Shown: positions 1-23,483 of the stretch, piece after piece | Position numbering within the stretch: position 1 is the first letter of the stretch | Layout: the number at the start of each line of letters is the position of its first letter | Assembly (NCBI RefSeq): GCF_016433145.1 | Contig: NC_058133.1 | Span: forward strand, 195,642,773-195,706,772 | Direction of reading: 5' to 3' | DNA length: 64,000 nucleotides | Origin: Gracilinanus agilis | Lineage: Eukaryota | Translations under genes and position numbers: made by a program | The notes under the pieces: generated by a model | What the model was told of the DNA's origin: nothing | The model's database searches: none | Seen by the model: the letters and a program-made list of their open reading frames with translations, nothing else

Positions 1-1252
1 ATCCTCATGCATTTATCAATAACTTATGCTACTCGCTCTATTTCCTAATGAACTCTTACTTACTTAATTCTTAATTAACAAATATCCTACTATAGCTGTC
101 CTCTCTTATACTACTGTCCTCCCCAAAGTCAAGCAAGATTAAAACATGGGGTCACTTTAGAATGACTCTACATTAGTGACTGATTTTACTTAATATTCCC
201 CCTTTGGTGTTAAAACTTATTCATGGTGCCTTACCACAATCAGATCTTTATTGTCCCTTTATTCTCAAATGCATCATCCTCTGCTCCTTGGGCCAAATCA
301 ATTTAAGTTGGTGTCAATTCCTATAAACTAGGGGACTGAAATTTTACAACAGAAAACAAGTGTACCGTGAACATGAATGCTACAAAAATCATAATTCCAT
401 ATTTCCTTCAATGTCATAAAAGTTAAACAAATTTAGTTAAGCAGAGATCTCATATATCCTTTCAGGAAACAAACCTTGCTAAATACATTCTAAGGTAAAC
501 TAACTCAGGTTACAGATTAAACAACTTAGAGACTCATCATGTGCTAATTTGAGAGGGGAGATTTACATGCAACCAAAGTCACCCAGAAAACTCAATAAAT
601 ATAAACACCAATAAACATAAATAAGCAAAAAAAAAAAGCTGAAATAATACAGTTATGGTCATCAATAGTAGATAGCACCATCTCAAAACAGTTTAGTACA
701 AACTCCTAAATCTGCTTTTCTGGTAATTAGTTGTTAAAAGCAAAATATGAGTTTGGCCATATAATTAATTTATTACAATTTATTGATAGGCAGAAAAGGG
801 AAAGGTAGATGGGAGAAAGAGAGAGGGGTGGGGCGTGGGGATAGAGAGAGAGAGACAGAGACACAACCAGACAGGGAAACAAGAAAAGAACTGAACCTCG
901 ACTAGAAGTGAAATTCCGGGGCGTGGCTTCTTCATAGGTGGTGAGGCAGCTGTCCAAAACAAGAAGGTCAATTTAGTCTGGAAAATTAAGTAGTCACTTC
1001 GGAAAGAGACCTGCCCTGGCAATATGAGGGGAGAGGACTCCCGAAGTCCTAACTGTCCCTCCTCTCCATGCAGTTCGGAGGACTCCTCCACACTCGGAGG
1101 AGCAGCAAGAGAAACAGTCGTCCACCTCGCTCTTCATTCCCCACAAATCTCGGGCAGGGGGTTCACTGAGACCTTCGATCGGTTATCCAAGGCTACAGTC
1201 ATTGGTAAGCAGGTGTCCTGACCGTCGCTCTTCCTCCCCACCTCCAACCCAG

Positions 1253-1764
1253 ATGGGTTCCGAGAACGTATCTGAATCTGTATAGATGGGCACCGACCGT
1301 CACCTGCGTAAGGAAGAAGGGTGAGTGAGGAGCAGGGCCATCCCGCGCCTCTTGTTCTTCCAGCCAACACCAGCCTTCTAGCTCAGTCTGCGGGCAAGAC
1401 CAAAGCTCAGAAACAAATTTTTCAATCTGGGGGCAGGGGGAAGTTAGGAACATTGTCCAAGAGGAAAGACCCAGTAAACAGGGTAAAACACTTCTCCACC
1501 TGTCCCTCCCTCCATCCCGAGGACTACTTGGAAAGCCCCGAGCCCTGTTCTCTCACCTCCTTGGGTGAGGCAGCCGGCTATCTCGGCACTGGAGACGCTG
1601 TGGGCCAGAGAGGTCCCCAACTCTTCCCCAGGGCTGGGGCCAATATGGCCAGCTCCTGCAGCCGATCACTTTCTCTGGAAAATTCAGAATGGTCCTCTGC
1701 AGCCATTCCTTATGGCTCAAGTTTTATAAGGAGGAGAAGAAACAATCGTGACCAAAAAAGGCCA
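1253..1764 (+). pseudogene. T-box copy 1 exon 1 (N-terminus and start of T-box)
   Basis: ATG at 1253 (MGSENVSESV*MGTD, TAG 1283-1285). Frame starting at 1671 reads FSGKFRMVLCSHSLWLKFYKEE; after a 1-nt deletion it reads ETIVTKKG CA|gtatgt (donor 1765). Compare TBX21 [32 protein letters not shown]. The 5' limit is approximate. Confidence 0.8.
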
Positions 1765-1899
1765 GTATGTGAGAGGCTGGGTCCTCGAAGCCCAGGAACG
1801 CAGGAACCCTAACGGGGTCTCTCTTTTTTTTAAGCCTCGATCAAGTACACTCGGAAACTGGGATTTAGTATGAAGCGCATGGCGGCTCCTTTTAGTGGG

Positions 1900-2440
1900 A
1901 AGTACGGGAAAAGGAGGGAAAAGGAGTGAAAAGACCTCTCGGCTACCAGATCCCCACTTTAAGAGTATATTGTCATGGAAAGACCTCCAGGAATTGATGC
2001 AGAGGGAAAGGAGCAGAGCCAGAAGAACATTGTACGCAGAGACTGATACACCGTGGTAAAATAGAATGTGGTAGACTTCTGTACTAGCAGCAATGCAATG
2101 ACCCAGGACAATTCTGAGGGATTTATGGTAAAGAACGCTACCCACATTCAGAGGAAGAACTGCAGGAGTGGAAACAGAAGAAAAACAACTGCTTGAACAT
2201 ATGGGTTGAGGCAGACATGATTGGGGATGTAGACTCCAAACTACCACACCAATGCAACTATCAATTTGGAAATAGGTCTTGATCAATGACACATGTTAAA
2301 ACCAGTGGAAATATGCATTAGCCATGGGGGATGGGTGGAGCTGGGGGGGGGGAGTGAAGGGGAAAGTAAGAGCATGAATTATGTAACTACGTTAACTTTT
2401 CTAAAAAATAAATATTAATAAATGTTTTTTTAAAAAAGAG
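1900..2440 (+). mobile_element. Marsupial L1 3' end fragment (in T-box copy 1 intron 1)
   Basis: Contains gacctccaggaattgatgcagag..gagcagagccagaagaacattgtac, shared with the other L1 3' fragments in the window; ends in an A/T-rich tail. Confidence 0.65.
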
Positions 2441-3785
2441 TATATGTTCAAAAAACGGGGGTGGGGGGTGGGGTAGGGGAAGACACAGTTAGGTGGGACT
2501 GTGTATATAGAGCCAGACCTGGAGTTGAGAGGACCTGAGTTAAAATTAAACTTCAGACTCTTTTTAGTTGTGTGACCCTGAGCAAGTCACTTAACTCCGT
2601 TGGGGTGGTGGTGGGAAGGACAGGGAGGGAAGGAGGGAGAGATAGAGACAGAGAGAGAGATGGAGAGAGAGTTAGTTAGTTTTGGAAAGGAAAAGATGGC
2701 TAAGGGAGTCAATGATGCTCTTCAGCCAGAAGGACAAGGGCAGATAGGTGAAATAAGCCCAAAGATCCAGGAACTTACAAAACCTATCTCACTTATTTTC
2801 TGGGACAATGTCTGAAGTATTATTAATTATCTCGAAATGCTCTATTCCCTTTCTCCTCTTGGAGAGAAATGGCAGTGAGTGGATGCTAACTACTAACTGC
2901 TGAGTGGGGCAGAGCATTTGAGGCTGACTATGCAGGTTCTAGTTAAGGGCCTCTAACAACCAGAAGAAAGTGAAACTTGCAACCTACTGGCAATTGGTTA
3001 GTGAAAAACTGTTGAGCACAGATTTTTGCCACTGTTATTTGACCCACTGGGCTATTTATTTTGGGAAACAAAAATTCAGGAATGGGGAAGTGAATAAGCA
3101 TTTATATAGCTCCTACTATGTGCCAAGCTATTACTTGGCACCACTACTAAAAAAGATACATTTTGTTTCATTTAATTCTCACAACAACCCTGTGAAGTGT
3201 AGAATGTTATTAATATCCCCATTTTACAGTTAAAGAAACTGAGGTAAACAGAGAGGTTAAGAGACTTGCCCAGAGTCACACAGCTAATAAATATGAGGCT
3301 GGATTTCAAATTGGTCTTCCTTATTCCAGGCACAGCCATTATACTCACTGTGCACAACCAGCAGCTGGTAGGATTAGATGTAATTAGATACACTGAATTG
3401 TTGATGATTCTGCACCTTTCTTTGTATGATCTTTAAGCTTTAATCAGCATCTGACCTGCCTGTTACCCAGGATATGAGATGAGGAAGACCACAAGGAGAC
3501 ATGACCTTGAGCAAATTACTTTCCTTCTATGAGTCTTCTGTTCCTCATCTATAACATGAGGGGAATAAGACAAGCTGATTTCTAAGGTGCTTTCTCTCTA
3601 ACATCCATACTTTCTCATCCCTTAAGTAATTGACATGGAGAATAGAAGAGGGTTTGATACTGCTGAGGGAGGCAAGAAATCACCAGACAGTTCTCATGAC
3701 CTCTATTTCCATAAGAAAAACTGTGCAATGAGGAAAGTTGGGGTAGAATCCAGTGCAGGTAGCTCCAATCTGCAGAATGATAGCA

Positions 3786-3949
3786 NNNNNNNNNNNNNNN
3801 NNNNNNNNNNNNNNNNNNNNNNNNNNNNNNNNNNNNNNNNNNNNNNNNNNNNNNNNNNNNNNNNNNNNNNNNNNNNNNNNNNNNNNNNNNNNNNNNNNNN
3901 NNNNNNNNNNNNNNNNNNNNNNNNNNNNNNNNNNNNNNNNNNNNNNNNN
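3786..3949. other. Assembly gap (N run) in T-box copy 1 intron 1
   Basis: 164 consecutive N. Confidence 0.99.
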
Positions 3950-4757
3950 AAGAGAAAGAGACAAAGATAATGAGAGAGAGATTAGGGGACAGCAGAGAGG
4001 GAGAGACAGAGAGACAGAGATAAACTTTGGATGTGGTCTTTGGGTAATTCACCCCACTTCCCTCCAGCAGCCACCCTCTAACACATAAAGATATACACTC
4101 AACTCTGCCCCACTAGAGCTCATTTGGGTTTACCTATCAGGACTATGAACTTCAACTGGCATTGGTCAGTAACTGAAAAGATTCACTCCTATCCATTTGC
4201 TCTTAAGTTTGTCCAAGTATGGTAGAGGAAGAAAAGGGCAGAAAGAAAGCTTTTCATGTCAATAGCTTCTGAATTTTAGTAGGTAGAACTGGAAAAAGGC
4301 TTCTCATAAACCAACTAATGAATTTCAATTGAAACCTGAGGAGACTATGGCCCAGAGAAGTGATTTGCTCAGGGTCACACAGGCAGGTAGTAAGTGGCAG
4401 AATTAAAAAAAAAATGCCATCGATCCAGGAAAATGGGCAGAAAGGGGTTTTGTCCTGTCCTTCTCCCATCCCCAAGCATGATGGATAATCCCAGGGAACT
4501 AGAAGGAAGTGGCAGTTGTATGGTACAATTTCATTCTCACTGGGAGGAGGGAAAAGGTCAGGGCCTACACAAGCCCTGCAGCCTGCTCTTTTACCAATAA
4601 ATGTTCAAGACCAGTCAAAGTAGCAAGTTGAAACTATTAAGGAATCCCAATTGGGGGAGGCTTAAAGACATCTAGAGGAAAACTGACCTTTATTACTGCC
4701 CATTCCATTCTCAATTTGCTGCAACTCTCCCAGATCACTCAAAACAAAACAAAACAG

Positions 4758-4945
4758 GGGGCAGCTGGGTAGCTCAGTGGAGTGAGAGTCAGGCCTAGAG
4801 ACAGGAGGTCCTAGGTTCAAACCCGGCCTCAGCCACTTCCCAGCTGTGTGACCCTGGGCAAGTCACTTGACCCCCATTGCCCACCCTTACCAATCTTCCA
4901 CCTATGAGACAATACATTAAAAGTACAAGGGTTAAAAAAAAAAAT
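4758..4945 (+). mobile_element. Marsupial tRNA-derived SINE (SINE1_MD-like)
   Basis: ggggcagctgggtagctcagtgg..ggaggtcctaggttcaaa..ctgtgtgaccctgggcaagtcac with A-tail. Confidence 0.85.
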
Positions 4946-6023
4946 ATATTCTAAAAAAAAAAAAATCCTTACCTTTTGTCTTAGAATCAGAACTGTGTAT
5001 TGGTTCCAAGGCAAAAGAGCAGTAAAAATTGGGCATTGGAGGGTTAAGTGACTTCCCAGATTCACAAAGCTAGGTAATATCAGGGATCAGATTTGAATCC
5101 AGGACTTCCCATCTCTAGACCTGGCTCTCAATTCATTCAGCCACCTAGCTGCCACACTTCTAGGTCATTTAAAAAATATTTCTCTTGGAGATGGAGAAAT
5201 ACTGACCAGCTCTTCCTTTTTGGAAATGAAGTTCATTTGGGAACCTGTTAACTGATACTGGAGACTGTATGTTTTATTTTTATGCCTTTATCTTCTGTCA
5301 TAGAATCAATATTAAATATTGATTCCAAGGCAGAAAAGTGTTAAGGGCTAGGACTTGTCCAGGATCACACAGCTAGGAAGTACCTGAAGTCAGATTTAAA
5401 TCCAGGTCCTCCCAACTCCCCATCTGGCTCTCTGTCCACTTAGCCATCTAATTGCTTCTCAGCAAAAAGTTTCTGACAAAGCTGGAATTTTTGACAAAGC
5501 TGAAAGAACCCTGCACCCACTCACCCTTCCACAGATCCTCCCAGGTACAGTCCCGGAAGAGGTGAAATTTCTGAGGTTTTAATATCAGAACTTCAATAAG
5601 CTTCTTGGGCATTTATCCCTTCCTCATGTCCATTTTGGACTCCTCTCCCTTCCTTTCTCTAGTTCACCTTGCTCATCCTGTCTCCTAGGAAGAACACCTT
5701 CATAGATTAGAGTCCAGATCCTCTGGCCCAGGACCTAGGACTCCTGCTTCCCCCCAAACAAGGAGATCTAGAAGTTAAAGCCCTGCTATTTGGAGAAAGA
5801 TGAGATAAGAGAAAACTATGTTGTCTAAGAATAATGTCTCTGGCTTAGCCTGTGGATGAGTGGAGTGAAATGGAGACAGTAAGTGATTATAATTATTTGT
5901 TTATTGATTGATGGGAAATCAACAACCATTTAATAGGAAAGATCAATCAACATACTTGTTACACTCCATATGTTCCTCTGCCAAATGCCAGAGATATAAA
6001 GAATAATTTAAAATAGTCTATAC

Positions 6024-6354
6024 CCGTGATGGTGAGCCTATGGTATGTGTGCCAAAGATGGCATGCTGAGACCTCTCCGTGGGCATGTGTACTATCCCTG
6101 GCAGAGTAAGTTACTGGAAAGACAGAGGGACTCCAGCAGAGCTGCTCCCTTTCACCTCTCCACCAAACCTCCGCACCCTTCTGTACTTCTTCCCTCCCCT
6201 GAGCAGAGCACTTGGGCCACTCCCCTTCCATTCTCCCTCCCCTGTCTGGATTGGAGGGGGACTGGGCTGGGGAACACTGCATGCCATCTTGGGGAGGGTG
6301 GCAGGTGGTCTCTAAAAGGACAGGTGGTCTTTAAAAAAAGGTTTACCACAACTG
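6024..6354. mobile_element. hAT-type MITE (family A)
   Basis: Imperfect TIRs ccgtgatggtgagcc / ggtttaccacaactg; 8-bp TSD gtctatac / gtttatac. Homologous to 19916-20334. Confidence 0.75.
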
Positions 6355-6472
6355 GTTTATACCTAGGGCAGAGCAGTGCCTAATCCAAACTACTCTGGAC
6401 ACCTGGAAGAAGGTGGGCTGAGCAAATTCTCTCCTACTTTCCCTTCTCTCTTTTTTTCCCCCTTCTTTATAG

Positions 6473-6630
6473 ACAAATGTTCCCATTCCTGGCTTACAAA
6501 ATTCATGGGTTGAGCCCCATTGCTAGTTATCATATGTTTGTGGAAACAGTACCAACTGATCACCATTACTTGTGTTTTCAGAATGGCGAATGGGTTCATT
6601 TCAATGGAAAGGAAGAGAACAATATTCTAG
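6473..6630 (+). pseudogene. T-box copy 1 exon 2 (open frame, intact splice sites)
   Basis: Acceptor ttttatag at 6472, donor gtaagg at 6631. Reads QMFPFLAYKIHGLSPIASYHMFVETVPTDHHYLCFQNGEWVHFNGKEENNILG, homologous to TBX21/EOMES RMFPFLSF..GL.PT.HY..FV.VV..D..HWR.Q.GKWV.CGKA. Same intron phases (2 and 1). Confidence 0.92.
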
Positions 6631-7083
6631 GTAAGGAAGTTTGGAAAGCTGGTGGGAGTGAGGGAAGGGGCAGGTACTTGAGTGGATCAGCTAATGGGAT
6701 ATTGTTTCATTTGTCACTGATGTTATGGTGCCCTCTGGTGGGGCCCCTAGCAAACTCAATCAACCTTTTTTCCTTGTCCTTCATCACTCCTCCATACTTA
6801 TTGGGTTCCTTTATTTCCCCTCTCCACTCCCCATCTTTCCCAGCCCAACGCCCTCATCCTACCTTTTTCCTTTCTTTCTCCAAATCCTAGGTTTTTCTTT
6901 TTTCTGCTTTTAAAGTCTTTTTTTCTTATCTCAGTGCCAAATGATTCTGTAGTCAAGCCTCAGAGAAATCATGGACACCTCCTCCTACCCCAGGATTCCC
7001 TGATGAACCTCTCCAAGGTCAGGAACCCTCAAGATTCTCTCCCTATGGACAGAGAGGCCTAATAGATATACTCTTTTCTACAG

Positions 7084-7197
7084 GGAACTTTCTGATAGTA
7101 GCAGGACAGAAAACGAGATCTTATAGCAGGTAACCAAGTAAGCCTGAAGTTTCCATTGCTCATACTTCCAGAAGTGGTGGAAGAAGTTGTAGAAGGA
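7084..7197 (+). pseudogene. T-box copy 1 exon 3-like remnant (highly degenerate)
   Basis: Acceptor ttttctacag, donor gtaagt at 7198, located between E2 and E4. Reads GNFLIV...*..KPEVSIA versus GNRLYV...RQEVSFG, with an internal TAA. Confidence 0.5.
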
Positions 7198-7448: not shown

Positions 7449-7603
7449 ATGATCATTTTAAGGTCCTGCCACAAATACCAGCCAAAGCTTCACATCTCAG
7501 AGGTGAAAGATGGAAAGCATAGACCCCAGGTTCCTCCTCCTCCTATATCTTCACCTTCCCGGAAGCAGAATTCATTGCTGTGACTAAATATCAAAACAGT
7601 GAG
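7449..7603 (+). pseudogene. T-box copy 1 exon 4 (frameshifted)
   Basis: ag|ATG ATC ATT... reads MIILRSCHKYQPKLHISEVKDGKHRPQVPPP, then a frameshift in a (cct)n run, then YIFTFPEAEFIAVTKYQNSE|gtgagg. Compare TBX21 [22 protein letters not shown]...HIFTFQETQFIAVTAYQNAE. Confidence 0.92.
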
Positions 7604-8716: not shown

Positions 8717-8788
8717 ATCCTTCAGCTAAAAATTCAGTACAATTCCTTTGCCAACAAATTTATTCAAAGGATACATCCAGGAGAAAAC
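8717..8788 (+). pseudogene. T-box exon 5 copy A
   Basis: Acceptor tctctag; reads ILQLKIQYNSFANKF, versus ITQLKIDNNPFAKGF. The donor is degraded. Confidence 0.82.
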
Positions 8789-9041
8789 TAAGTACTTGTG
8801 GGGCTCAGCTCCTTTTTCTGTCTTTACCTCTCTCCAAATATTCTAGGACAGGTAATGTCCAATCAATCCTCTCCTCTACCTTCTCCCAGAATTCTTTGTA
8901 TTGATATTATGAGTAGACCGGGAGGAAAATTAGTTAAATAAGAAGTAGGCTTGCAATTTTGGCACTGGTTGTAGGAGAGCTATTATAGAAGATTATATTG
9001 TCTTTAACCACATCCTTTCCCCCACCTTCTTTCCCTTCAAG

Positions 9042-9500
9042 GTGCCTTCCATCTGGTAGAATCCAGGGCAACTACTAAGACTTTCCTGAAAGTAATTCTG
9101 GTAGCTATTTATTAGATCTAGGAATGAGTGCTTACCAAGCCAAAGATTGTGTACCTCTGATCCCCTAGATCTTTGTTCAGGCCCCTTAAACCACCCTTAG
9201 ACTGCACTCAGAACAGCAGCACCTTACTTCCCTTGGGCATGAATGATATGAATTTGAACTTCTGTCTCTACCTTTGATGCCTTCCTGACCATAAATAGGA
9301 TACTGTAGTCCTTCTAGGAGATTGGCCAACTTCTTCCTTATGTAATTCCAAGGTAAATGGGGAAGGCTAACTCCAATTTGTACCCCAAATGTCTAGAGAC
9401 CCTGTCTTAGAGGAAGAGAAGAGCACTGAAGAAGAAATCTGGATGTATATCCAAAATCAGATAGACACGATTCATGACTGGGTGAAGGACATGTCTCGCA
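9042..9500 (+). pseudogene. TBX21 exon 6-like copy A (C-terminal region)
   Basis: Polypyrimidine acceptor cttcaag. Homologous to modules at 10695, 18331 and 20600. Contains LGEGH (ctgggtgaagga), versus TBX21 LGEGD. Multiple stops. Confidence 0.7.
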
Positions 9501-10365
9501 ATGATTCAAGCAAGGATGAAATGTCTTCAGTGTGTAAAGGAAGAGAGCTATGTGCCAAAAAGGAACTCATTGGGACAGTCTGGATGGATCAGCCATAGAA
9601 AGGTTTTTCACTTGGCTTTTAGTTTAGGGGTACCTTCTTTTCCAAGTCTAGAAAATCTAAGCAACTCCACTCATACAGTTCTTCTTCCCTCCTTGTCCTT
9701 CCTTATCCTTTATTCCTACTTCTTTCCAAATCTCATCTTGCATAGCCTATTCTTCTCTTCTTGTCTCTTTTCTCTGCCTGGACCTGTCCATATTTTCCTC
9801 TTATATCAATTTCAGAGAATCCAGTTGTCCAATCCCATAGAAACCAGAGAGAAGTCCTCCTCTCCCTTTATCCCTTGCTGGACCTCTCCAATGTCTACAA
9901 TCCAAGTTTATGGAGTGTCTGGAATTATGGAATGCCTGGTCTAGGGGCTTCAAGGTGGCTCAATGGATAGAGAGCTAGCCCTGGAAAAGGGTTCAAATCT
10001 AGCTTTAGACACTTTCTAGTGTCTGACCTTGGGCAAGTCACTTAATCTCAGTTGCCTTGCTCTTCCTGCTCTTCTACCTTAGATACTTAATATTGATTCT
10101 AAAACAGAAGAGGGAAAAAAATGTGCTCTAGGCTGTCATAGGGACAAAGTGGGTCAGGGTGATGACAAGATACTCCATCTGTATAAGCCCTTAGAATGAT
10201 CCAAGTATTCTCTTTGTCCCATTTTACAGAAAAGAAACCGAGGTGACTTCCCCAGTGCATCAGAGCAAAAACAAAAGCCCAGTCTTTGATCTTCCTAGAG
10301 GGTAGCTGTAGGCTTCCAAAAAGAATACCTTGAACTCACTGGTTCCTATTTCCTTTTGCTCTGAG

Positions 10366-10427
10366 GTCACACAGCTAAACATTCACTGTAATCCCTTTGC
10401 CAATGATTTTAAAGAAAGCTTGAATAA
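10366..10427 (+). pseudogene. T-box exon 5 copy B
   Basis: 62 nt, the length expected for TBX21 exon 5 (20 codons plus 2 nt). Reads VTQLNIHCNPFANDFKESLN. The donor gtaagt is mutated to ataagt at 10428. Confidence 0.88.
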
Positions 10428-10694
10428 ATAAGTGCTTATGGGGCTCAGCTCATTTTTATTTGTTTGTTTCCCCCTTCTTTGTCCACCAGGCTCGGAGTGT
10501 TCTCGGAGTAGTGCCTTCTCAGCCCTTTCTAATCCCCTCATCTCCTTTCTTCCATGTCTATGCTGAGGCTGTGGGTAAAGAGTCAACTGATTAGATAAGA
10601 AGCAGGACTGGAATTCTGATGCTGGGGGTAAGGGGATTAGGATTCTGGGAGATCCTATTACCTTTAATTACATGGCGTTTTGTTTTTTTCCAAG

Positions 10695-11190
10695 GTGACT
10701 TCCATCTGTAAAATCTAGCACCACACCGATATCTCCCCTGAAAGAGTTTCCACTAAGAAAGCCCTTGGGTTAGGTCAGGTGCTTGCCAGGCTAGGGAAGA
10801 AATATTTCTGACTCTGCCTCTTGATCCAGGACCCTCAGGTTTCTTTTGACTATAACTATGACACCCACTTTCAGTAGCAGCAACACCCTTCCCTTAGCAT
10901 GAATGACATGAAGCTAGAATTTCTATACTTTACCTGCCATGTCTAACCATTCCAGACAAAATGTTGTAGTTCCTCCTAAGAATTGGCTTATTTTCCTTTT
11001 GTGTAATTCAAGGCCAACAGTGAAAGCTTGACTCTAATCTGTACCCCCAATGCCCATGGACCCATCCCTGTTGGCCTAGAAGAGAAGAAGTCTAAAGAAC
11101 TTTGAATCTCTATCTCCAAATTAGATTCTAATTATTCAGGAATGAGTGAGACTCAGAGGAGATGCCTCTCACAATGATTCAGTGGCATTA
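10695..11190 (+). pseudogene. TBX21 exon 6-like copy B
   Basis: Acceptor ttccaag. Nucleotide homology to copy A. Contains MPMDP (versus LPMEP) and SGMSETQRR (versus SGLGEGDSKRRR). Stops present. Confidence 0.68.
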
Positions 11191-14099
11191 TGGATGAACC
11201 CTGCTAAATTTTTTTGTGTGTGTGCCTTTGTATGTGAGTTTTGAAGGGAGGAGAGCTGGAAAAAGTAGACTTTCTTATTTGTTAGGACACTTGGCTCATT
11301 TTATGCTTTTCTTTTTTAAAAATGTGGTAAAAAAAATAAATTAAATTAAAAGTGTGGTCAGCTGACCTGCCTTGGAAAGGAATCCCAGATGTCTCTAAAG
11401 TGGGTCTATTAGGTGCCTTCCTTCAGAGGGGGATGGATGGACATCCTGGAATAGTCAGAAATAAAAGTGATGGTGAAGAAGGTCTTACATTTTGTCTAGA
11501 TTTTAGGGGAGGGAAGGGGTCTATTTTTTAGAAGCTATTTATTGTCCACGATATAAGATGCCAATATCTTTGGTTCATTTACTTTTAGAAATAAACTTGG
11601 AAAAGTCTGCCTGTCTCAATGTGAAGGGGACAAAGGTAAGGTGGGTACAGGAGATGACAAAAGAATTTGAGCCTTCCTAGGGTCCCATGGAGAAAGTGAT
11701 GGATTTGACTCCCTTTGGGATTACAATACATGAGTATAGAGATCAGCTCTCTGGCTTCCCAAGCTTTCTCCCCTGTCCTGCTAACTTGTTTCATTTTTGA
11801 AAGGGCAGAAGAACCTGAGTAAACCACATGTTCCCTTCCCTGGCTTTCCTGTATAGTGCTCATGCTTGGATAAATGGGAACCAAGGCTGACATAAAGCAG
11901 AGCCATGATTTTGGTCTGCGTCTCTGTTAAACACCTGTTGAGGACATTGGTTCTACAACTAGAGGAGATAGTTGGAGATCCTGTGGTTATAGACTCATAA
12001 TAATAACAAAGAAGTCTGAAGTGGTCAAAGCCTTTTTACAACAACCCTTTGATGGCAAGTCCTGGGAGAAGGTATTATTATCCCCATTTTATAGATCAAG
12101 AAAATAAGGTTTGGATTTGTTAAATGATTTCCCTATTGGTCGCATAGTCTATGTCTGAGTAAGATACTAAAAAACAATAGATCGAGCTAGAAGATACCTT
12201 AGAAACCACCTACTAATCCTCACTGAACAACCAGGGAAACTGCCCAAGAGTGTGAAATGATTTGCCCAAGGGTCACTGGTGGTAGGCAGCAGACTAGGAA
12301 GGTAAGTTCAAAATCCTTGCTCTTTTTCCTTTGTTACATTCCCTCTGGTGGGGAGAGTCACACTCAGAGAGGAAGTGACTCTCCCCAGCTGATTCAAGCA
12401 GCTAGTGACAGCTGGGATATAAACCAAGATTCTCTATGTGTCCCATTCTGCCTCCCGTAGAGATGACTCCTCACCTATCAAGGGTCCCTAGGTCAGCAGC
12501 AATGTCCAGCAACCAAGAATGGATATGAGATTGAACTAACTCCAAAGGTCATAAACTTTAAATATGTAGCTGCAAAGGAGGCAGAAGACAGTTGAGGTCT
12601 GGGGTTAATTTTACTGGAACTTAGAAAGTCATAGAGATTCTCCTTAAACAAAGAAGGTGTGAAATGGAAGAGAGACCTGGAAGCAAAGGGTCCAGTCTTG
12701 AGGTGACTTGCCTCTGCCCAATCATATCCCCTCAAAAACATATACATGCAGGGGCAGCTAGGTGGCTTGGTTGACTGAGAGCCAGTCTTGGGTTCAAACC
12801 TGGCCTCAGCCATTTCCTAGCTATGTGACCCTGGGCAAGTCACTTAACTCCCATTTCATAGTCCTTACTGTCCTTCTGTCTTGGAACTGTTGTGAGGAAG
12901 ATTAGTTAGTAATAGTGTTGGACCTAGCAGGAAGGGCTGGAGGATTCCAAGTAGGAATGAAGGAGCAGGAAGTAGGGCTTGTGCTCTGAGAGAGACTCCA
13001 TTAGTGGTTGGCACAAACTGTTGCTAGCCCTGGGAGATCTCAGAGTTAAGGACACCCTGCATCCTGATTCCCGGGGATCCTGAGTGGTGGTGGCTTTCAG
13101 CAAGTGGACAAGACCTGCAGAGCTCCACCAAGTGGAGGAGGGATTTGGGATCTGGTGGACAGCATCTCAAGCACACTCTCTCTACTTGGGTATCTTGGAC
13201 CACCTTGGCTTTTGGCATCCTGTGATCATCTTTGGATTACCATGAGAACCCTCAAAGCCACCCTCAGGCCCTTTAGCTGTGCTGGTCAAACCTGGCTGGA
13301 ACCAGGTTTGAAACAGCCTCCCAGTGACTCCAGTACTGCTCCTTTGAGCCCTGCCTGGCCTAGGTCAATTAGAATTAGAGTAGACAAGTCCTCCCCTTGC
13401 CCCTGTGATTTGCCCTTTAGGTTTTTAAGTGCAGAATTCCCTATCCCACCTTTATTTAGTTAATCATAATTAAACAGTTAAAAACCTTTACCTTGCCTGC
13501 TGGTTCCAAAGACCCTGGTCTAGGGTGAGCAGGGTGACCATTGGGGCCAGCTGCCATTCTTGATTCTTGGTCTCCCTATCCTGGCTGGTCCTGTCTCTCC
13601 TTCAACCTAGTGTGTGTACCCACAAACCATTAGGTCACATTTTACATACCTGGTGCCCCACCTTTTTTACAGAACCAATATGTAATATTGATTCTAAAAT
13701 GGTAGGCAAAGGTTTAAAAAAAATACACATGTGAGGCACTAAGTAGTTTAGTGGATAGAAAACAAGGTCTTGAGAAAGGAGGTCCTGGGTTCAAATTTGA
13801 TCTCAGATACTTCTTAGCTGTGTGACCCTGGACAAGTCATTTAATCCCACTTGTCTAACTTCTACCACAATTCTGTCTTGGAACCTACCCATTTTAAGGC
13901 AGAATGTAAGGGTTTCAAAAAATATACACATGTTGTCTGAAAAACAACCCATAGAGAAAATGCCTACTTCTATTGCATTTGGCCCATTACAACTCATGGG
14001 GACTGAAGCTCCAGTATTTGTTGTAGAGTGGCAAGGAAGTGGGGGTGATAGGAAAGAGAAGAGGGAGTCAGTTTAGTGAATAGACTCTGCTCTTTCAAC

Positions 14100-14640
14100 A
14101 TGAACTTGCAGACCTATGAGCAAGGCAAGGAAAGAGGAAAGGACTAAAGAAAAAAGAAAAGGAGGAAGAAAAAAAAGGGTGAAGGGAGAAAGTAAGAAAA
14201 AGGGGAAAGGAGAGAGAGACAGAGAGACGGAGAGTGAATGTGAGTGTTGGAGACAGAGAAAGATAGAAACAGAGATAGAAAGAGATAGACAGGGATAAAG
14301 ACAGAGAGACAGAGAGAAAACATAAGACTAGGCCTTAAGAAGAGAGGAGGAGAGAGACAGACAGAGGCAGACAGACAGAGAGACAGAGAGTGAATGTAAG
14401 TGTTCGAGACAGAGAAAGATAGAAACAGAGATGAAGACAGAGGGACAGAAACAGAGACAAAGATAGACAGAGACAGAGACAGACAGGGATAGAGACAGAG
14501 AGAATATATAAGCCTGGGCCTTAAGAACAGAGGGGGGGAAAGATGACAGAGACAGAGACAGGGGAAGGAAGGGAGGAAGGAGAAAAGGAAGGGAGAAAGG
14601 GAGGAAGGGAGCAAAGGAGGAAGGGAGGGAGGAAAGAAAT
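14100..14640. repeat. Complex purine-rich (AG/AGAC) repeat with an internal ~190-nt tandem duplication
   Basis: gagagtgaatgt(g/a)agtgtt(g/c)gagacagagaaagatagaaacagagat...ggccttaagaa occurs twice (~14230-14340 and ~14385-14530). Confidence 0.8.
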
Positions 14641-15049
14641 AAATTCTCAGAAGAGGGAATTTACTGATAGGCTTTCTGTGTGGGTTTGGAGGCAGAGAGA
14701 GGCAGGTTTAAAATTGGGCCAGAGGCTGCCGAGAAAGATGAAGCCGATTCAATCTGCATAAAGAAGTTGATTGAGGGAACTATCTGTTATTGCCAGCACA
14801 GGGATAGAAGAACCCCAAAGGCCCAGCCGCCAGTCCTTCTCCTCCGCAAAGCCAGAAAGACTATGCCACTTTCAGCCAGTCGGAGGAGCAGCGAGAGAGA
14901 CAGCCGTCCCTCCTGCATTTCATTCTCCACTAACCCAGGTCGGGCGACTGTCGTGCAGTCATTTAAGGCTACAGCTGCTGGGAGGCAAATGCCCTGACAG
15001 TCAGAGGGGAAGCGGGAAGCTTCCAGGGCTTCCCACTCGGTTGCCCACT

Positions 15050-15528
15050 CCTTACCAGTTGGAGAGTCCGGAAGACTCGCTCTCAAGTCAGGTTGATGTA
15101 CCGCGGTGCCTAAGGACAAGAAGCCGGGAGCTGCGAGGAGCGCAGTGCAAGGCCGCTACGTCTACTAGCTCGAGCCGGGATCCCTGTTGGACGCCGGAGG
15201 AGCTGACAAAGACTGCAGAGGCGGCTACGACTGGGCACAGGACGTCGCCTACCCAGGATTCTCGATGGTGCTCGTGGGCACCCAGTCAGCCACCAGCCGG
15301 GGCCGCTTCCAGCCCGCCAGTGCCTATCCTGACACTGTAGACGTGGTGGGTGGAATGGATCACCAGGACTACCAGCTCTTTCCTAGTTCCAAAGCGAATC
15401 TGTCCTACGGATCCAGGAACACCAAATGATTTCTCTTGAAGACAGAGATCGCTTTCTCCGGAAAACCATTCCTTGTGGCTCAGGTTCTATAGGCAGCAGA
15501 ACGAAAAGATCCTTACCAAGTAAGGCAG
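15050..15528 (+). pseudogene. T-box copy 2 exon 1
   Basis: Reads QGRYVY*LEPG (versus TBX21 QHRYFYPEPG) ...IAFSGK, then a ~20-nt deletion, then HSLWLRFYRQQNEKILTK*GR|gtaagt (donor 15529). Stops at 15166, 15427 and 15521. The 5' limit is approximate. Confidence 0.85.
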
Positions 15529-15961
15529 GTAAGTGGATGGCTGTGGAGTGAGAGGTCTGAATCTTCCAGGAGCTCCAGACGGAATCTCCCTTTCTTAAGC
15601 GTTGCTCAAGCTCACTACTAGGAGCTGGGGTATGGCACTTCCACTTGGCTTCTCTTTTTAGCGTCTGTGATTTAGAAGAGGCTTGTCAAGTTCTAGATAC
15701 TCCTTTTAAGATCCTCTTCTCTCCTGGCCTGTCCTCTCTTCTCTCTTCTCTCTTCTCTCTTCTCTCTTTTCTCCTCTCCTCAGGCATCCTCTCCCTCCCA
15801 CCCACCACCCACCTCTCTCTTCCCTCTTTCTCTTTTTAGTGACAAATGGAAGTGAGTGGATACTAACACAATATTGGAAATAGCATTTACAGTAGACAGT
15901 GCTTCTTCCAATTAAGGGTTTCTATTGTGGGGAAAGAAAAAAAAGCCTTGCAACTTTTTTT

Positions 15962-16879: not shown

Positions 16880-17935
16880 TTTTATTTTTATTTTTGTGTA
16901 AGTCTTTATTTAATTAATTAATTTAGAATATTTTTTCCATGGTTACATGATTCATGTTCTTTCCCTTCTCTCCTCCCTCCCCACTCCTGGAGTCGACCAG
17001 CAATTCCACTGGGTTTTACATGTGATACAATTTTTAATAATCATTTTCTGAACTGTTTGCAATCTATGTTCTTTCCCTCCTTCCCACCCCTGCCCCCTCC
17101 TGAGGAAGACAAGTAATATGCTATAGGTAGAGTATCATATAGCACTTATTTCCATGTTTATCCTGTCAGGAAAAAGGCATTTATTGTTTACACTAGAGAA
17201 AAGTTAATGGAGGAAATAAAGTGAAGAATGTTATGCTTCAATCTGCACTTGGACTCCATCTGTTCCTTCTGTGGCAGTAGATATCCTTTTTCATTATGAG
17301 TCCCTGGATGCTGTCTTGTTGACAATGATCCTTATCTTGTTGACAATAGTTAACTCAATCACAGTTATCATTATGCATTATTGTTGTTACTGTGTACAAC
17401 ATTCTCCTGGTTCTACTCACTTCACTTTGCATCTTTCCAGGATTTTTTTGTGATTGCCTTGTTTGTTATCTCTTATGGCACAATAGTATTCCATTGCGAT
17501 CATATACCATGACCTGTTCAGCTGTTCTCCAATCTCTTTTGGTTCCAGTTCTTTGCCACCACAAAAAGAACTGCTATAAATATTTTGGTACACATAGGTC
17601 TTTTTATTTAACCTACAGACCATAATAGTGGTATTGATAGGTTGAAGGGTATGCACAGTTTTATGGCTTTTTGAGCATAGTTCCAGATTGTCCTCCAGAA
17701 TGGTTGTATCAGTTTGTCATTCCACCAACAGTGTATTAGTGTCTGAACTTTTCCATATCCCCTCCAATATTTATCATTTTCCATTTTAGTCCTTTTAGCC
17801 AGTCTGATAGGTGTGAAGTAGTACTTCAAAGTTATTTAATTTGCATTTCTCAAATTAATAGTGATTTAGAGTATTTTCACATATGATTAGTTTTAATTTC
17901 TTCATCTGAGAATTGCCTATTCATTTCCTTCGACC
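16880..17935 (-). mobile_element. L1 fragment (ORF2 C-terminus and 3' UTR)
   Basis: ORF 17608-17829 MKYYFTPIRLAK..CWWNDKLIQPFWRTIW..IPFNLSIPLL matches the L1 ORF2 C-terminal region; the 3' UTR follows. Confidence 0.85.
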
Positions 17936-18330
17936 ATCTGTCAACTGGAGAATGCTTTGTAAAGAAGTGGGCAAAAACGTTTCCATTGACACATGCTCCC
18001 TTCCCCTGGGACATATGCTATTGGACCTCTTCTTCCCATTCACAGCTTCTCTCTCCCTCCACTTGGACTGCTCTTGGCCAAACCCCCATCACTAGTATCC
18101 ACAGACCTCTCTGTTTTTCTATGCCAACTTGGGCTTGAAAATTGATGCATTGTAATTTTTAAAATTTCCCAATTAGGATTTAGGTCTGGTACACTTTTTA
18201 GATTTATTTGGAGGAGTTTAAGGGAGGGGGCAGGGGTCTCTCTAGTGCTTCCTACTGCTCTTCCATCATAGCTCTACTTTTTAATGGTATGACCTATAAG
18301 ATGTCTTTCCCCCCCCTCCTCTCTCCTCAG

Positions 18331-18790
18331 GATGCCTTACAGCTGTAGAATTCAGTGCCAACACCTTCTCTGAACCAGCTCCTGATGACTAGATTTATCC
18401 CTTAGAACTAAAAGAGAGCTGACCAAGACAGAGACAAGGTGTTTTGGACTCCCTGGCATTTTATCCAGGTCCCTAACCCACCCTTGTAGGATGCCTATGA
18501 CTCTTCTCACAACAACAGCACTTTGACCTGGATGACATGAACTCTGGACTTCTGCCCTCCATTTCTATAGCTGCCATACTTCACGACTCCAGACCGGATG
18601 CTCTGGTCCCACTATGGAAGTGACCCACTTCCTTTTCATGGAACTCCATGGACAACAGTATGAACTGTCTCCAATCTATACCCTCAAAGGCCATAGACCC
18701 TATCACTGAAGCCAGGAAGAGAAAGGCTTCACAAAGAACTCTGACTTATGCCTGCACTGGGTGAAGGAGATCCTATGGATGCAAGGTGTT
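18331..18790 (+). pseudogene. TBX21 exon 6-like copy C
   Basis: Acceptor ctctcctcag. Reads FDLDDMNSGLLPSISIAAILHDSRPDALVPLWK and ALGEGD, versus TBX21 FRAVSMKPAFLPSAPGPTMSYYRGQEVLAPGAGW and GLGEGD. Many stops. Confidence 0.75.
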
Positions 18791-19617
18791 CAGTATGGAG
18801 AACCAGGGAACAAGAGAACAAGTAGGGATTTACTGGGTCACCTTGACTGATCAACCATAGAAATGTTTATCTCTTGGTTCTCAGGTTGAGGTGCCCTCTC
18901 TTGGGTGCCAAATTAACCCAATCAATCCCTTTCTCTCGGGCATCCCATCTCCCTCCTTCTTTATACCTTCTTTCTACTCCCTCTCCTCCCCACCTCCTAG
19001 CACCTTTCCCAACCTATTCCTCCCTTCTTATCTTTTCTCTTATTACAATTCCCCCGTCTTCTTTGCCTGGGCCTGTCCATATATTCTTCTGGCTCTAGTT
19101 CTAAATGATTCTGCTCCAAGCCTCATAGAAACCAGAGACATCTGCTTCTACCCGAAGTTCACATAATGAACCCCTTCAATAGGGAGAATCCAAGTTCATG
19201 GAGCCCCAGAAATCCCAGTTTAGATTTAAACACTTCTTAGTGCCTTAGTCACTTCTCTTCCTCCTTATATCTGCTTTTCTGGAAATTAATAAAAGGAATG
19301 GTGTCCCTTCATACTCCTCCCTGACCACAACCACCTTTCCCTGGTGCTGCTTCCAAGGTTGTACTTTGCTTATTTTGGATGCCTGTGTGTGGATGCTGAG
19401 GGGACATGAGCCCTAGGCAGATGGTAAGATAGGTAGGCCCTAGGAGAAGACTTGGAATAATTAAAATATTCTCCTGCTCTCACTTTTCAGCTGAAGTAAC
19501 TAAAGCGACTTCCTTAAGGTCACCCAATGTGCAAAAACTGGTCTGGTTTTCCCAGAGGAAAATTCTAGATTTCCAAAGAGAAGACTGTCCTGATCCTACT
19601 GGCTCCTTTTTCTCTGG

Positions 19618-19679
19618 ATCACACAGGTAAAAATCTACTACAATTCCTTTGTCAAAGGCCATAGAGAACACTTTCATTC
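19618..19679 (+). pseudogene. T-box exon 5 copy D
   Basis: Reads ITQVKIYYNSFVKGHREHFHS, versus ITQLKIDNNPFAKGFRENFES. The acceptor AG is mutated to GG and the donor is displaced. Confidence 0.88.
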
Positions 19680-19915
19680 TGGAGAAGGCTTTGGATGCAT
19701 AAGTACTGGTGGGACTCAGCTCCTGTTTTGTGTCTCTATTCCTTTATCCACCAGACTCCAAGTGTTTTGGATGGTACCATTCAGTCTTGCCAAGTCCTCT
19801 CTACATTCTCCCAGGACTTTGTGTGGTAAGGTTGTGGAGAGAGAGAAAAGAAATTGCTTAGATAAGGAGCAGGCTTGGAGCTCTGAAGCTAGAGTGCAGA
19901 GATTAGATTCTAGGG

Positions 19916-20334
19916 CAGTGATGGCAAACCAAAGATGGCACACAAGAGCACTCTCTCTGGGCATGCGTGCTGCTACACCCCCCTTCCCCAGAAAGGCAGA
20001 GGGACTTGGGCAGAGCTGCTCCCTTCTCCCTTTCCACTGGGCCTGATGACATTTTTTCACATCCTCTACTCCTCTGCCCAGCAGCCCAATGGGAGCACAC
20101 AGGGAGTAAAATGGGCAGTACAGAAGCAGCAGAGATGGAGGGGAGTTGAGCACTTGGGTCACTCCCTTCCCTCTCTCTACACTGGCAGAGGACATTCCTC
20201 ACTTCACCTGCCCCTCTGCCCAGCAGCCCAGTGAGAGCGCTTCCTCCCTCCCTTGTGTGAGGTAAGGGGGAGGGCAAGCCAGCACCTGGTGAGGGGGGCA
20301 TGGCACGTAGTCTCTAAAAGGTTCACCATCACTG
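19916..20334. mobile_element. hAT-type MITE (family A)
   Basis: TIRs cagtgatggcaaacc / ggttcaccatcactg; perfect 8-bp TSD ttctaggg on both sides. Confidence 0.85.
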
Positions 20335-20599
20335 TTCTAGGGTCAACAAGGTGGCTCAGTAGATAAAAAGCCAGGCCTGGAGACAGGAGGTCTTGGTTCA
20401 AATCTGGTCCCAGACACTTCCTAGCTATTTGACTGTGGGCAAGTTACTTAACCCTAATTGCCTACCCCTTATTGCTCTTTTGCCTTGAAACTGATACTTG
20501 GTGTTGATTTCAAAACAGAAGGTAAGGGTTTAAAAAAATTTCTATGAGGTTGGATGAATTCTAATTTCATTCCCCCTCCCCCCACTCCTCTCTCCTCAG

Positions 20600-21300
20600 G
20601 GTGACTTACAGATGTAGAATACAGTGCTTATACCTCCCCATAACCAGTGTCTGATGACTAGAACTACCCACTAAGTAAAGAGGATACCTGAGAAGACAAG
20701 GATAAGTTCTGGACTCCCTGATATTTTATCCAGATCCCCTGGCCACCTTTGGCAGATACCTATGACTCAACTCACAGCAGCGCCATTCTTCCCTTTAACT
20801 TGGATGGCATAAACCTTGGTCTTCTGCCCTCCACTTCTCCACCTGCCATGTCCTATGACCCCAGACAGAATGCTTTGGTCCCATTATGGAAGTGGTCCAC
20901 TACCCTTTCATGGAAGTCCAAGGGCAACAGTTTAGACCAGGGATTCCCAAAGTGGGTGACACCACCCCCTGGTGGGTGCTGCAGCGATCCAGAGGGGCAG
21001 TGATGGCCACAGGTGCATTTATCTTTTCTATTAACTGCTATTAAAATTTTAAAAATTTAATTTCCAGGGGGCTAAGTAACATTTTTTTCTGGAAAGGGGG
21101 CAGTAGGCCAAAAAAGTTTGGGAACCACTGGTGTAGACTATCTCCAGTCTGTACCCCCAAAACCCATGGACCCTGTCACTGAAACCCTGTAGGAGGAAAG
21201 ACTTCAAAAGAAGCTCTAGTCCTATACCTCTAAGTCTGATTCTTATGTCTTAGCTGTTTGAAAGAGATATCCCAAATTGAGAAAAGGAGTATTTACTTTG
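20600..21300 (+). pseudogene. TBX21 exon 6-like copy D, interrupted by a hAT MITE
   Basis: Acceptor ctctcctcag. ORF 20749 contains LLPSTSPPAMSYDPRQNALVPLWKW (versus FLPSAPGPTMSYYRGQEVLAPGAGW). KPMDP follows the insertion at 20938-21130. Confidence 0.78.
20938..21130. mobile_element. hAT/Charlie-type MITE inserted in exon 6 copy D
   Basis: TIRs cagggattcccaaa / tttgggaaccactg; 8-bp TSD gtttagac / gtgtagac. Confidence 0.85.
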
Positions 21301-23483
21301 ACTGTCAGTAGAGGGAATGAGGGATGAGTAGTGCTGACCCATGAGAGTAGATGGGCACATTCAAGCTAACTCTACTGTAATACTGTCTCTGCAAAGCAGA
21401 AGTCTCCGCCCCCCTTGGGAGAAGACTCAGGACAAGACCACCAAGAATATCTTTCTTCTTGTTCCTCATGTCTGCTCCCCTAGAAGTCAATAAAAGGAAT
21501 GGTGCCTGTGCACTTCATAAACCTCTCTGACCACAGTCATTTTTTCTTTGTTTTGACTCCCAAGACTGAACTTTGCTTATTTGGTATGTCTGTCATGTGG
21601 GTGCTATGGGGAATTGAAAGGGGAGGGTAAACTCTCATCTACTTCTTAAGTCACTTTGTTCATTTTTTTCCAGTCAGAGTAAGGGAAACATCCTGGGTTT
21701 CTTTGATAGCATCTGGGTGCCTTCCTGCCTAGGGGAATGGGCATTCTGGAATAATTGAGTAGAGGGGAGTGTCTTAGAGTGTTTAGTGTTTCACCTCTAG
21801 TTTTAGAAAAATGTATGTTGTTGTTTTTTTTGAGGTCGTTTATTGTTCCTGATATAAAATATCATTATCTTTGGTTTATTGTTTCTTTTAATAAACTTGG
21901 AAGAGGCTGTCTGCATTAGTATAAAGGGAATCGAGGATGAGATGGGAACAGGGGACTGATTATAGAATTTGAACTCTCCTAGGGTCCCATGGGGAAAGCC
22001 AAATCCAAAGAAAAGGTGTGACTCCCCTTGGGGCATGTGATACATAAGAGAAGGGATCAGGTCTCTGATTTCCCAATTCCCAGGCTCTCTCTTATTCTTG
22101 GTGGAACCTTCTATGCTGTCTCACCTCTGTTAGTGCACAGAGAACTAGGCCAGTTATGTCCTCTCTTCCCTGCCTCCCCCATTTGGCACTGGTACTTGAA
22201 TAATTGGGAGCCAAGGCTACTATAAAGCAAAGCTGTGATTTTTTTCTGGGAAGCAGCATGAGTTCTGGAAGGAAGGATGTCCTTGAGCTTTTCTCCCATC
22301 CTGTCTATGTCCCTGAAATCCAGGATGTAGTAGACCCATGGTATATACCTGTCCAGCTCATAGGTTCTAAAACTGGAGAGGATCTTTAGAGATCCTATAG
22401 TACTACTCTCATCATAATAGCTGATATTTGTAGAGAGGTCTGAGGTGGGCAAAGATAGGTGGCAAAGGAAATAAAGATCTGTGCCAGGAGGCAGGAAGAT
22501 CTGAATTCAAATCTGGCCTCAGACCCTGGACACAGGATTGCTTAACCTCTGTCACTTAATCTTCACTTAAGAGTCACTTAATCTCTGTCTGCTTACGGAT
22601 TATCAACTGTGATATGGGAGAAATAACACTCCTACCTCCCAAGGTGGTTGTTAGGATCTAATTACATAAATTGTAAACTCTTAGCACATCACCTGAAACA
22701 TAGCAGGCACTTAATCAATGTCCATTCCCTTCCTTTTACAACAACTTTTGAAGGTTAATCCTTCAGGGGATATTGTTATTCCCATTTTACAGATCTAGAA
22801 CTGAACTTTGGAATCCCTATGCGAGGCAAGATTCTCAGATGCAGGTCTCACACATGAGATGGAAAAGTACCTTGAAAGATCTAGTCCTCACTGAATAGAT
22901 GCAGAAAAGAGCCTAAAGAGGAAAAATTATTTACCCAAAGTCATAGTGGAGGGAAAGAAGCAGAAAAGATTTCAGGCTAGGTCCAAATTCAGTGGGATTT
23001 TTTCCCCTTTGCCACAATGTCTTGGTGCAAAAAAAGTCATCCCCAGAGAGGGAGAAGTGATTTGCCCAAGTTCCTAGGGCCAACAGTTAGCAGATCTGAG
23101 ATTTGAAGCAAGGTCTTCTATGTGTCCCATTATGTGCCACGAAGGGATAAGGGTCTCCCCATCTATTGAGATTTCCTATATAATAGGCACAGTATCCAGA
23201 AACCAAGAATGGGCATGAAGCTGGATTCTACATCCAAAGACCATGGGATTTAATTATGGATATGGAGAATGGTTGAAAAAAGACAACAGAGATCTGGGTC
23301 TGCCTTTATTGGAGCTCAGAAAGTCATGGTAATTCACCTTAAAACAAAGAGGGCCTGAAAAGAAATAGTTACCATGGAGGAGGGACCCAGGATCCCAGGA
23401 ATCATTCAAGAGGAAGTCTGCCTGCCTGCAAGCAGCTTCTCTACTCTTTTCTCAACCACATGCAAACACAGACACACACTGCT

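Follow-up and report, generated by a model that had tools for sequence, protein, structure and literature searches.

Probable tandem TBX21-like pseudogenes between TBX21 and an OSBP-family gene in the marsupial Gracilinanus agilis

Background

In eutherians, T-bet (TBX21) is the single-copy master regulator of type-1 immunity. Marsupials carry, in addition to this gene, annotated 'TBX21-like' (TBX21L) proteins, and the present analysis concerns remnants of this family in Gracilinanus agilis. The remnants lie in a stretch of 64,000 nucleotides, referred to here as the window (NCBI RefSeq assembly GCF_016433145.1, contig NC_058133.1, positions 195,642,773 to 195,706,772 of the forward strand), and all window coordinates are counted from its first nucleotide. 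At 1.1-22.4 kb, the window holds what are, with a probability of about 85%, two tandem, same-strand, intron-bearing pseudogenes of the marsupial-specific TBX21L family, flanked on one side by the real TBX21, beyond the window's edge, and on the other by an OSBP-family gene.

The real TBX21 proteins of 12 marsupials (Monodelphis, Gracilinanus, Antechinus, devil, dunnart, bilby, Dromiciops, Trichosurus, glider, koala, wombat and wallaby) form one 90%-identity cluster with lengths of 575-576 amino acids, the dunnart model having 479. The Gracilinanus protein, XP_044531706.1 (P0249), is intact, has 575 amino acids and is encoded on the same chromosome as the window. Expression of TBX21 in MAIT cells of the opossum has been described (PMC10733631).

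Intact proteins named 'TBX21-like' or 'T-box domain-containing' are available in RefSeq and UniProt for at least 10 marsupial species, including Monodelphis, Gracilinanus, Dromiciops, Trichosurus, koala, bilby, devil, dunnart and Antechinus. A full-text literature search found no paper describing this family; one candidate, PMC3296468, deals with the loss of Tbx6L instead. A sequence-only reading of the window knew of no description of such a family. The databases already annotate it, but in publications it is under-described and apparently absent. Its members fall into two clades.

Clade A consists of intron-bearing genes in Australidelphia. These are compact (5-10 kb) and have six exons with a second exon-5/6 unit. 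The clade comprises Dromiciops XP_043859205.1 (P0020, locus L007), Trichosurus P0130 (L004), Antechinus XP_051852589.1 (P0006, L006), Macrotis XP_074077063.1 and members in Sarcophilus and Sminthopsis; none was found in didelphids. The Antechinus gene is located 48 kb downstream of TBX21 and is inverted. A degenerate exon-1-like T-box relic is present approximately 6 kb upstream of it on the opposite strand (L006:3557-3727, minus strand of the locus), and this interval therefore holds additional dead copies. In Trichosurus and Dromiciops, a dead second TBX21-like copy is found downstream (L004:19788-19961; L007:26346-26549). Since both are interrupted by a stop in place of the Q codon of DQHH, this pseudogene probably predates the split of the two orders.

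Clade B consists of intronless retrocopies, often in tandem, in koala (P0023, L003), Monodelphis (XP_056677033.1, XP_056677032.1 and P0219) and Gracilinanus (XP_044539591.1), with one Antechinus protein nearest to them that is probably a member (XP_051829550.1). The intronless and open structure was read in koala and Monodelphis DNA, and the Gracilinanus and Antechinus members were placed by protein trees. In koala, three intronless T-box genes encoding 727, 735 and 737 amino acids are arranged head to tail with a spacing of 5.2 kb (L003:4760-17469; NW_027555625.1, ~367.77 Mb). The C-terminal (exon-6-like) domain is present twice in each of them, and the C-terminal cores of the three are 99% identical. 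The clade B genes of Monodelphis, a single-exon gene of 474 amino acids and a prediction of 1418 amino acids with an uninterrupted frame over the first 1320 codons, are both located off the chromosome of TBX21. In LOC130458091 of Monodelphis (L001:10001-15389; CM051225.1, ~209.1 Mb), residues 1-1320 are one uninterrupted open reading frame with two identical T-boxes in a 583-amino-acid tandem repeat, that is, a retrocopy duplicated inside a single open frame. The TBX21-like protein XP_056677032.1 is adjacent in accession number to the protein of this locus. Chromosomes other than that of TBX21 also carry clade B in Gracilinanus and Antechinus. In a quick tree, an Antechinus 'TBX21-like' protein (P0103, on a 686-Mb chromosome) and an unnamed 849-amino-acid protein from a sequencing-run assembly (P0058) were nearest to the koala retrocopies, which is why clade B may extend to dasyurids. 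Among these retrogenes, the open reading frames of intact members range from 474 to 1418 codons; some contain two T-boxes or lie in tandem arrays, and both didelphids and Australidelphia have members of clade B.

For the DNA comparisons, the real TBX21 loci of Monodelphis (L008) and Antechinus (L005) were used together with the clade A loci L004, L006 and L007 and the intronless TBX21-like loci L001 (Monodelphis), L002 and L003 (koala).

Results

DNA profiles of the individual T-box exons were built from eight family genes and searched with nhmmer against positions 1-23000 of the window. Exon 2 (6476-6631, E=1.6e-29) and exon 4 (7453-7603, E=1.8e-31) gave a single match each, the end of exon 1 gave two (1672-1761, E=6e-16; 15433-15526, E=3e-15), and exon 5 gave three (8723-8786, 10370-10420 and 19622-19691, E=8e-6 to 6e-11). 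Four exon-6 units at about 9.0-9.5, 10.8-11.2, 18.4-18.8 and 20.6-21.3 kb were found by tblastn with the Gracilinanus TBX21 as query. Exon 3 was not found in this range, the best nhmmer E-value being 1.3, and a sensitive search with tblastn and nhmmer gave no match for exon 3 of copy 1 or for exons 2-4 of copy 2. The exon inventory of the sequence-only reading (exon 2, exon 4, two exon 1s, three exon 5s and four exon 6s) thus proved accurate, including its coordinates. The same applies to the motifs that it had cited, as QGRYVY*LEPG, LLPSTSPPAMSY and PMPMDP are all present.

The T-box identity of these pieces, for which a Pfam comparison had been suggested, is evident from PF00907: exon 2 scores 37.2 bits against a cut-off of 26 bits, and the two halves of exon 4, which are in different frames, score 21 bits each (E=2-3e-4), one matching positions 115-136 and the other positions 145-164 of the profile. 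Mouse T-bet (5t1j) is the closest solved structure for exons 2 and 4, and for exon 2 and the first half of exon 4 it ranks ahead of Brachyury, TBX5, TBX1 and TBX3. The splice phase between exon 1 and exon 2 is consistent (CA|A, giving ..TKKGQ-QMFPFL). The best protein matches of exon 2 in phmmer searches were marsupial 'TBX21-like', 'uncharacterized LOC130458091' and 'T-box domain-containing' proteins, none of them more than 53% identical.

Both copies retain the exon order and intron positions of TBX21, the one verified splice phase and homologous flanking DNA. Intervals of 0.3-4.7 kb separate their exons and show homology to TBX21 introns, and the homology of upstream flank, introns and 3' untranslated region (UTR) to the TBX21 loci L008 and L005 is colinear at 66-82%. 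The copies therefore originated by duplication at the DNA level and not by retroposition. A retrocopy origin, as seen in the intronless loci L001, L002 and L003, is ruled out by the retained introns and flanks. Within the TBX21 group, the architecture is that of TBX21L genes. Intron 3 has about 360 nucleotides in the window, compared to 340-850 nucleotides in TBX21L genes and about 6 kb in TBX21, each copy carries the repeated exon-5/exon-6 unit of intact TBX21L genes, and the arrangement is colinear with L004, L006 and L007.

Nearly every piece is broken, a point that was absent from the sequence-only reading. Across both copies, we counted about 20 in-frame stops and about six changes of frame; one exon is deleted, three to four are missing, and four splice sites are lost (all three exon-5 donors and one exon-5 acceptor). 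An uninterrupted complete T-box domain is not present, since exon 3, corresponding to about one fifth of the domain (about 40 of 195 residues), is gone and exons 1 and 4 are frameshifted. With parental intron positions, homologous non-coding flanks and many disabling mutations, both copies are unprocessed pseudogenes and not hidden working paralogs. Assembly error as the cause of the lesions was ruled out because these are too numerous and too varied. The T-box DNA of the window is most likely without coding function today, judging from its sequence.

Copy 1 starts with an exon 1 remnant covering the N-terminal region and the start of the T-box (1492-1764, + strand, as for all T-box features below). 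It is spread over three frames by at least two frameshifts: tblastn with XP_044531706.1 matched 1492-1647 in frame 1 and 1671-1736 in frame 3, and 1739-1764, in frame 2, encodes ..ETIVTKKGQ up to a GTATGT donor. Intron 1 contains an assembly gap at 3786-3949, where no exon is expected and which no reading frame crosses. Homology to TBX21 intron 1 at 3660-3773 ends 13 nucleotides before the gap and continues at 4674-4744 and 5162-5255 in the same order and orientation. The gap flanks are therefore consistent with continuity. Exon 2 (6473-6630) is the sole intact piece, with 52 codons, an AG acceptor and a GT donor. In it, DHHYLCF replaces the conserved DQHHWRY, so that the Trp of all other aligned family members is lost. 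Exon 3 is deleted at 6991-7087: compared to L008, L004, L006 and L007, intron-2 homology stops at 6991 and intron-3 homology resumes at 7085-7087, about 80-90 nucleotides into intron 3, with no profile match between them. Exon 4 (7449-7603) changes from frame 3 (7449-7529) to frame 2 (7532-7603) at a TCC run (7532-7543).

The first exon-5/6 unit of copy 1 comprises an exon 5 (unit 1, 8717-8790) of the longer form seen in clade A, with its donor changed from GT to CT, and an exon 6 (unit 1, 9042-9550) with at least three stops and a frame change near 9186. The internal duplicate comprises exon 5 unit 2 (10366-10428), with its donor changed from GT to AT and flanks that align colinearly to the second such unit in the Dromiciops gene (L007), and exon 6 unit 2 (10695-11186), with at least five stops. 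The 3' flank (11412-11917) is homologous to the 3' UTR and downstream DNA of TBX21 and TBX21-like genes. Within it, 11436-11646 is 77.7% identical to L008 26745-26954, and L005, L004 and L007 match here too. Further downstream, 12352-12488 weakly resembles, in isolation, the tail of the TBX21 C-terminus (GEGDSKRRRVSPYDSGRDDSSP), spread over two frames with one stop (E about 0.01). A 28-nucleotide match to exon 6 of Antechinus TBX21 (93%) is present as well. By its sequence, this may be a fifth exon-6 fragment.

Copy 2 is preceded by TBX21 upstream-flank homology (14670-15102) in alignments to L008 and L005. Its exon 1 (15103-15529), detected by tblastn and nhmmer, has three stops, one frameshift and a 33-codon gap. 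Flank and exon together (14670-15529) are aligned by L008 9580-10588 and L005 9592-10688 at 71-82%. Directly upstream of this promoter-like region is a purine-rich, low-complexity stretch (14116-14614) whose translations are SLSL or RERE runs and which contains an internal direct repeat (14213-14378 versus 14369-14561). Between 15530 and 18300, exons 2-4 and the first exon 5 are missing, and the interval has repeats matching other parts of the window. Exon 6 unit 3 (18331-18761) has two stops and a frame change. Exon 5 unit 3 (19618-19700), which is of the longer form, has lost both its acceptor (AG to GG) and its donor (GT to AT). Exon 6 unit 4 (20600-21285) has at least six stops and carries LLPSTSPPAMSY and PKPMDP; its DNA identity to unit 3 is 75%. 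At its 3' end, the UTR and flank of the copy (21350-22378) have their homologue in the sequence downstream of TBX21, being 66-73% identical to L008 26277-27420 (Monodelphis) and L005 25110-26250 (Antechinus).

In a T-box tree of 195 columns with EOMES/TBR1-like rows as outgroup, marsupial TBX21 and all TBX21-like rows formed one clade (100/99) within mammalian TBX21 (99/98), sister to eutherian TBX21. The TBX21L duplication therefore postdates the marsupial-eutherian split. The window pieces fall inside this marsupial clade, which agrees with the earlier assignment to TBX21; an EOMES or TBR1 origin is ruled out by the T-box trees. Within it, copy 1 belongs to the TBX21-like family to the exclusion of the real TBX21 in three T-box trees (97/98, 94/95 and 97). 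As it groups with the annotated TBX21-like proteins, the marsupial lineage-specific T-box family that had been postulated is supported, and the intact relatives that were to be looked for in other marsupials exist in clades A and B.

Clade A was supported at 95-100 and clade B at 98-99 in the T-box trees, where copy 1 was weakly placed as sister to clade B (85/81). The tree of exon-6 DNA joined units 3 and 4 of copy 2 to the koala and Monodelphis retrocopies (100/99), and in the exon-1 DNA tree both window exon 1s were outside clade A (98/94). Clade-B-like residue states are found in copy 1 (VLC, SSSS and an acidic insertion) and in copy 2 (QQNE..ILTK). From their sequences, both copies resemble clade-B genes that kept their introns and then decayed. 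The dead downstream copies of Trichosurus and Dromiciops were ruled out as orthologues of the window copies, since they are in clade A (95/82; exon 1 98/94).

The T-box remnants on the plus strand are followed by an OSBP-family gene on the minus strand, convergent with them, and then by SP6, also on the minus strand. The OSBP-family gene (24465-28842), which is OSBPL7 by position, as expected by the sequence-only reading, consists of four stop-free pieces whose Pfam PF01237 matches are in profile order and cover profile positions 1-348 across 24.5-28.8 kb. A single N at 28845 lies within its exon-like open reading frame 28423-28953 (-). An intact C2H2 zinc-finger open reading frame of 381 codons at 61128-62270 (-) is presumably SP6, judging from the protein and the position. 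The layout matches the human order, TBX21-OSBPL7-...-SP6.

Discussion

In the history proposed here, a duplication of TBX21 would have taken place in stem marsupials, once these had separated from eutherians. In the duplicate, introns would have been shortened and the exon-5/6 unit repeated, and a second duplication would have given rise to clades A and B. A spliced clade-B transcript would then have been retroposed and its intronless copies amplified in koala, Monodelphis, Gracilinanus and probably Antechinus, and the intron-bearing clade-B genes beside OSBPL7 may have decayed later in the Gracilinanus lineage. The window copies cannot derive from the retrocopies because they have introns and 66-82% homology to TBX21 in upstream flank, introns and 3' UTR. 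They possibly represent the source of the retroposed spliced transcript, or else a closely related sister lineage. A broader proposal, to which we give slightly less than even odds, is that the window retains the decayed intron-bearing source locus of the pan-marsupial T-bet-derived retrogenes (clade B), the intact members of which would be working, fast-evolving and undescribed transcription factors.

For the T-box exons of copy 1, 64 nonsynonymous changes over 344 sites and 35 synonymous changes over 94 sites are lineage-specific, giving a ratio of 0.50. Intact genes have ratios of 0.45-0.51 in clade B and 0.30-0.37 in clade A. Compared to a crude neutral split of 3.66:1, copy 1 is short of nonsynonymous change (chi-square about 11). 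The pairwise ratio of nonsynonymous to synonymous divergence (dN/dS) between copy 1 and the real TBX21 is 0.26, the TBX21 branch adding only synonymous change. A nonsynonymous rate of about half the synonymous rate fits a gene that was functional for a long time before its death. We regard this as moderate support, though no proof, for a long working life of copy 1 ahead of its loss.

Several points weigh against the overall explanation given here. The ratio of 0.50 is a crude parsimony count over 146 codons, in which transition bias is left uncorrected. Differences to the real TBX21 by codon position (38/28/55) are nearly flat after subtraction of the estimated share of the TBX21 branch, and the identity of the exons to TBX21 (72-77%) does not exceed that of alignable introns and UTRs (66-80%). 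The approximately unbiased (AU) test rejects neither a grouping of copy 1 with clade A (p=0.32) nor its placement outside both clades (p=0.23). The branch of copy 1 is long (0.41-0.43), so that attraction to the fast clade B is possible. Exon-6 units 1 and 2 and both exon 1s have no resolved place in the DNA trees. In addition, an intact intron-bearing copy may exist nearby, either in the interval between TBX21 and the window or in the orthologous interval of another didelphid, the DNA read here at this Gracilinanus locus being that of the window.

The flat codon-position pattern, the equal conservation of exons and non-coding parts, the unfixed tree position of copy 1 and the complete lack of exons 2-4 in copy 2 would also be expected if the copies had been dead on arrival, that is, segmental duplicates of TBX21 or TBX21L that were incomplete or non-functional, never yielded a functional protein and drifted neutrally. 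Nevertheless, strict neutrality predicts a lineage-specific ratio of about 1 instead of 0.50 for copy 1, which moreover keeps every exon but the third and one correct splice phase, with exon 2 still open after roughly 25-30% nucleotide divergence. The grouping of copy 2 exon 6 with the retrocopies (100/99) is also difficult to reconcile with this explanation, since retrocopies require a transcribed and spliced source gene. Therefore, we regard it as unlikely, with roughly one chance in eight.

That the copies are instead working, fast-evolving TBX21-like paralogues with exons that are simply difficult to recognise is very improbable. The open exon 2 with good splice sites and the intact, fast-evolving relatives in other marsupials and elsewhere in the Gracilinanus genome would fit such genes. 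However, the stops, frame changes, deleted and missing exons and lost splice sites listed above contradict them, and in an exhaustive phmmer protein search no annotated Gracilinanus protein matched the window exons, the best match of exon 2 being the one at 53% identity.

The least probable explanation, that the remnants are the sole TBX21 gene of the species broken by poor assembly, could draw on the position beside OSBPL7 and on the homology of upstream flank, exon 1 and 3' UTR of copy 2 to TBX21, and is refuted by the intact XP_044531706.1 together with the many varied lesions. As assumed by the sequence-only reading, the copies are duplicates and not the TBX21 orthologue. They are not a conserved single gene with more than 90% identity, a role filled by XP_044531706.1, to which the window pieces are only 36-77% identical (tblastn). 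Copy 1 has only 63-64% identity to the real marsupial TBX21 over 149 T-box columns, and the flanks are about 70% identical to those of Monodelphis TBX21, where roughly 90% would be assumed for two didelphid orthologues.

As duplicated pseudogenes the relics are ordinary, and their interest lies in their family membership. They tie the scattered marsupial TBX21-like genes to a tandem duplication at the TBX21-OSBPL7 locus. If the broader proposal is true, marsupials have a private expansion of the lineage of the T helper 1 (Th1) and natural killer (NK) cell master regulator, and in didelphids the original genes have been replaced by their own retrocopies. As far as the data go, clade B survives in koala and opossums only as retrocopies, and the relics suggest that the didelphid retrocopies outlived their source genes. 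A marsupial-only family of T-bet paralogues that is open across several orders merits a description of its phylogeny, expression and DNA-binding specificity. For annotators and immunologists, caution is advised, since marsupial 'TBX21-like' matches mix the orthologue, two paralogue clades and pseudogenes.

Conclusions

Compared to the known systems, the window copies share with marsupial TBX21 (XP_044531706.1; Monodelphis XP_001372361.3, P0246, L008) the exon order, the intron positions, the exon 1/2 splice phase, N- and C-terminal motifs, the upstream flank, introns and 3' UTR, and the side of OSBPL7. Unlike TBX21, they have a short intron 3, a repeated exon-5/6 unit, no exon 3 and many stops and frameshifts, and they have diverged while the nonsynonymous divergence (dN) of marsupial TBX21 is about 0 between orders.

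With clade A, they have in common the compact six-exon layout with short introns, the second exon-5/6 unit, further copies in tandem and, in units 1 and 3, the longer exon-5 form. Unlike clade A genes, they are not open, and they are outside clade A in the exon-1 tree (98/94), copy 2 also in the exon-6 tree. The clade B retrocopies are the nearest relatives of exon 6 of copy 2 (100/99) and, weakly, of the T-box of copy 1 (85/81), and they share the states VLC, QQNE..ILTK and SSSS and the acidic insertion with the window copies. In contrast to these copies, which are intron-bearing, dead and at the ancestral locus, the retrocopies are intronless and open in the koala and Monodelphis DNA that was read, are on other chromosomes in Monodelphis, Gracilinanus and Antechinus, and often form tandem arrays. 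With respect to unprocessed pseudogenes in general, there is nothing unusual in the window copies, which have kept introns and flanks, carry disabling mutations and are in tandem with the parent locus.

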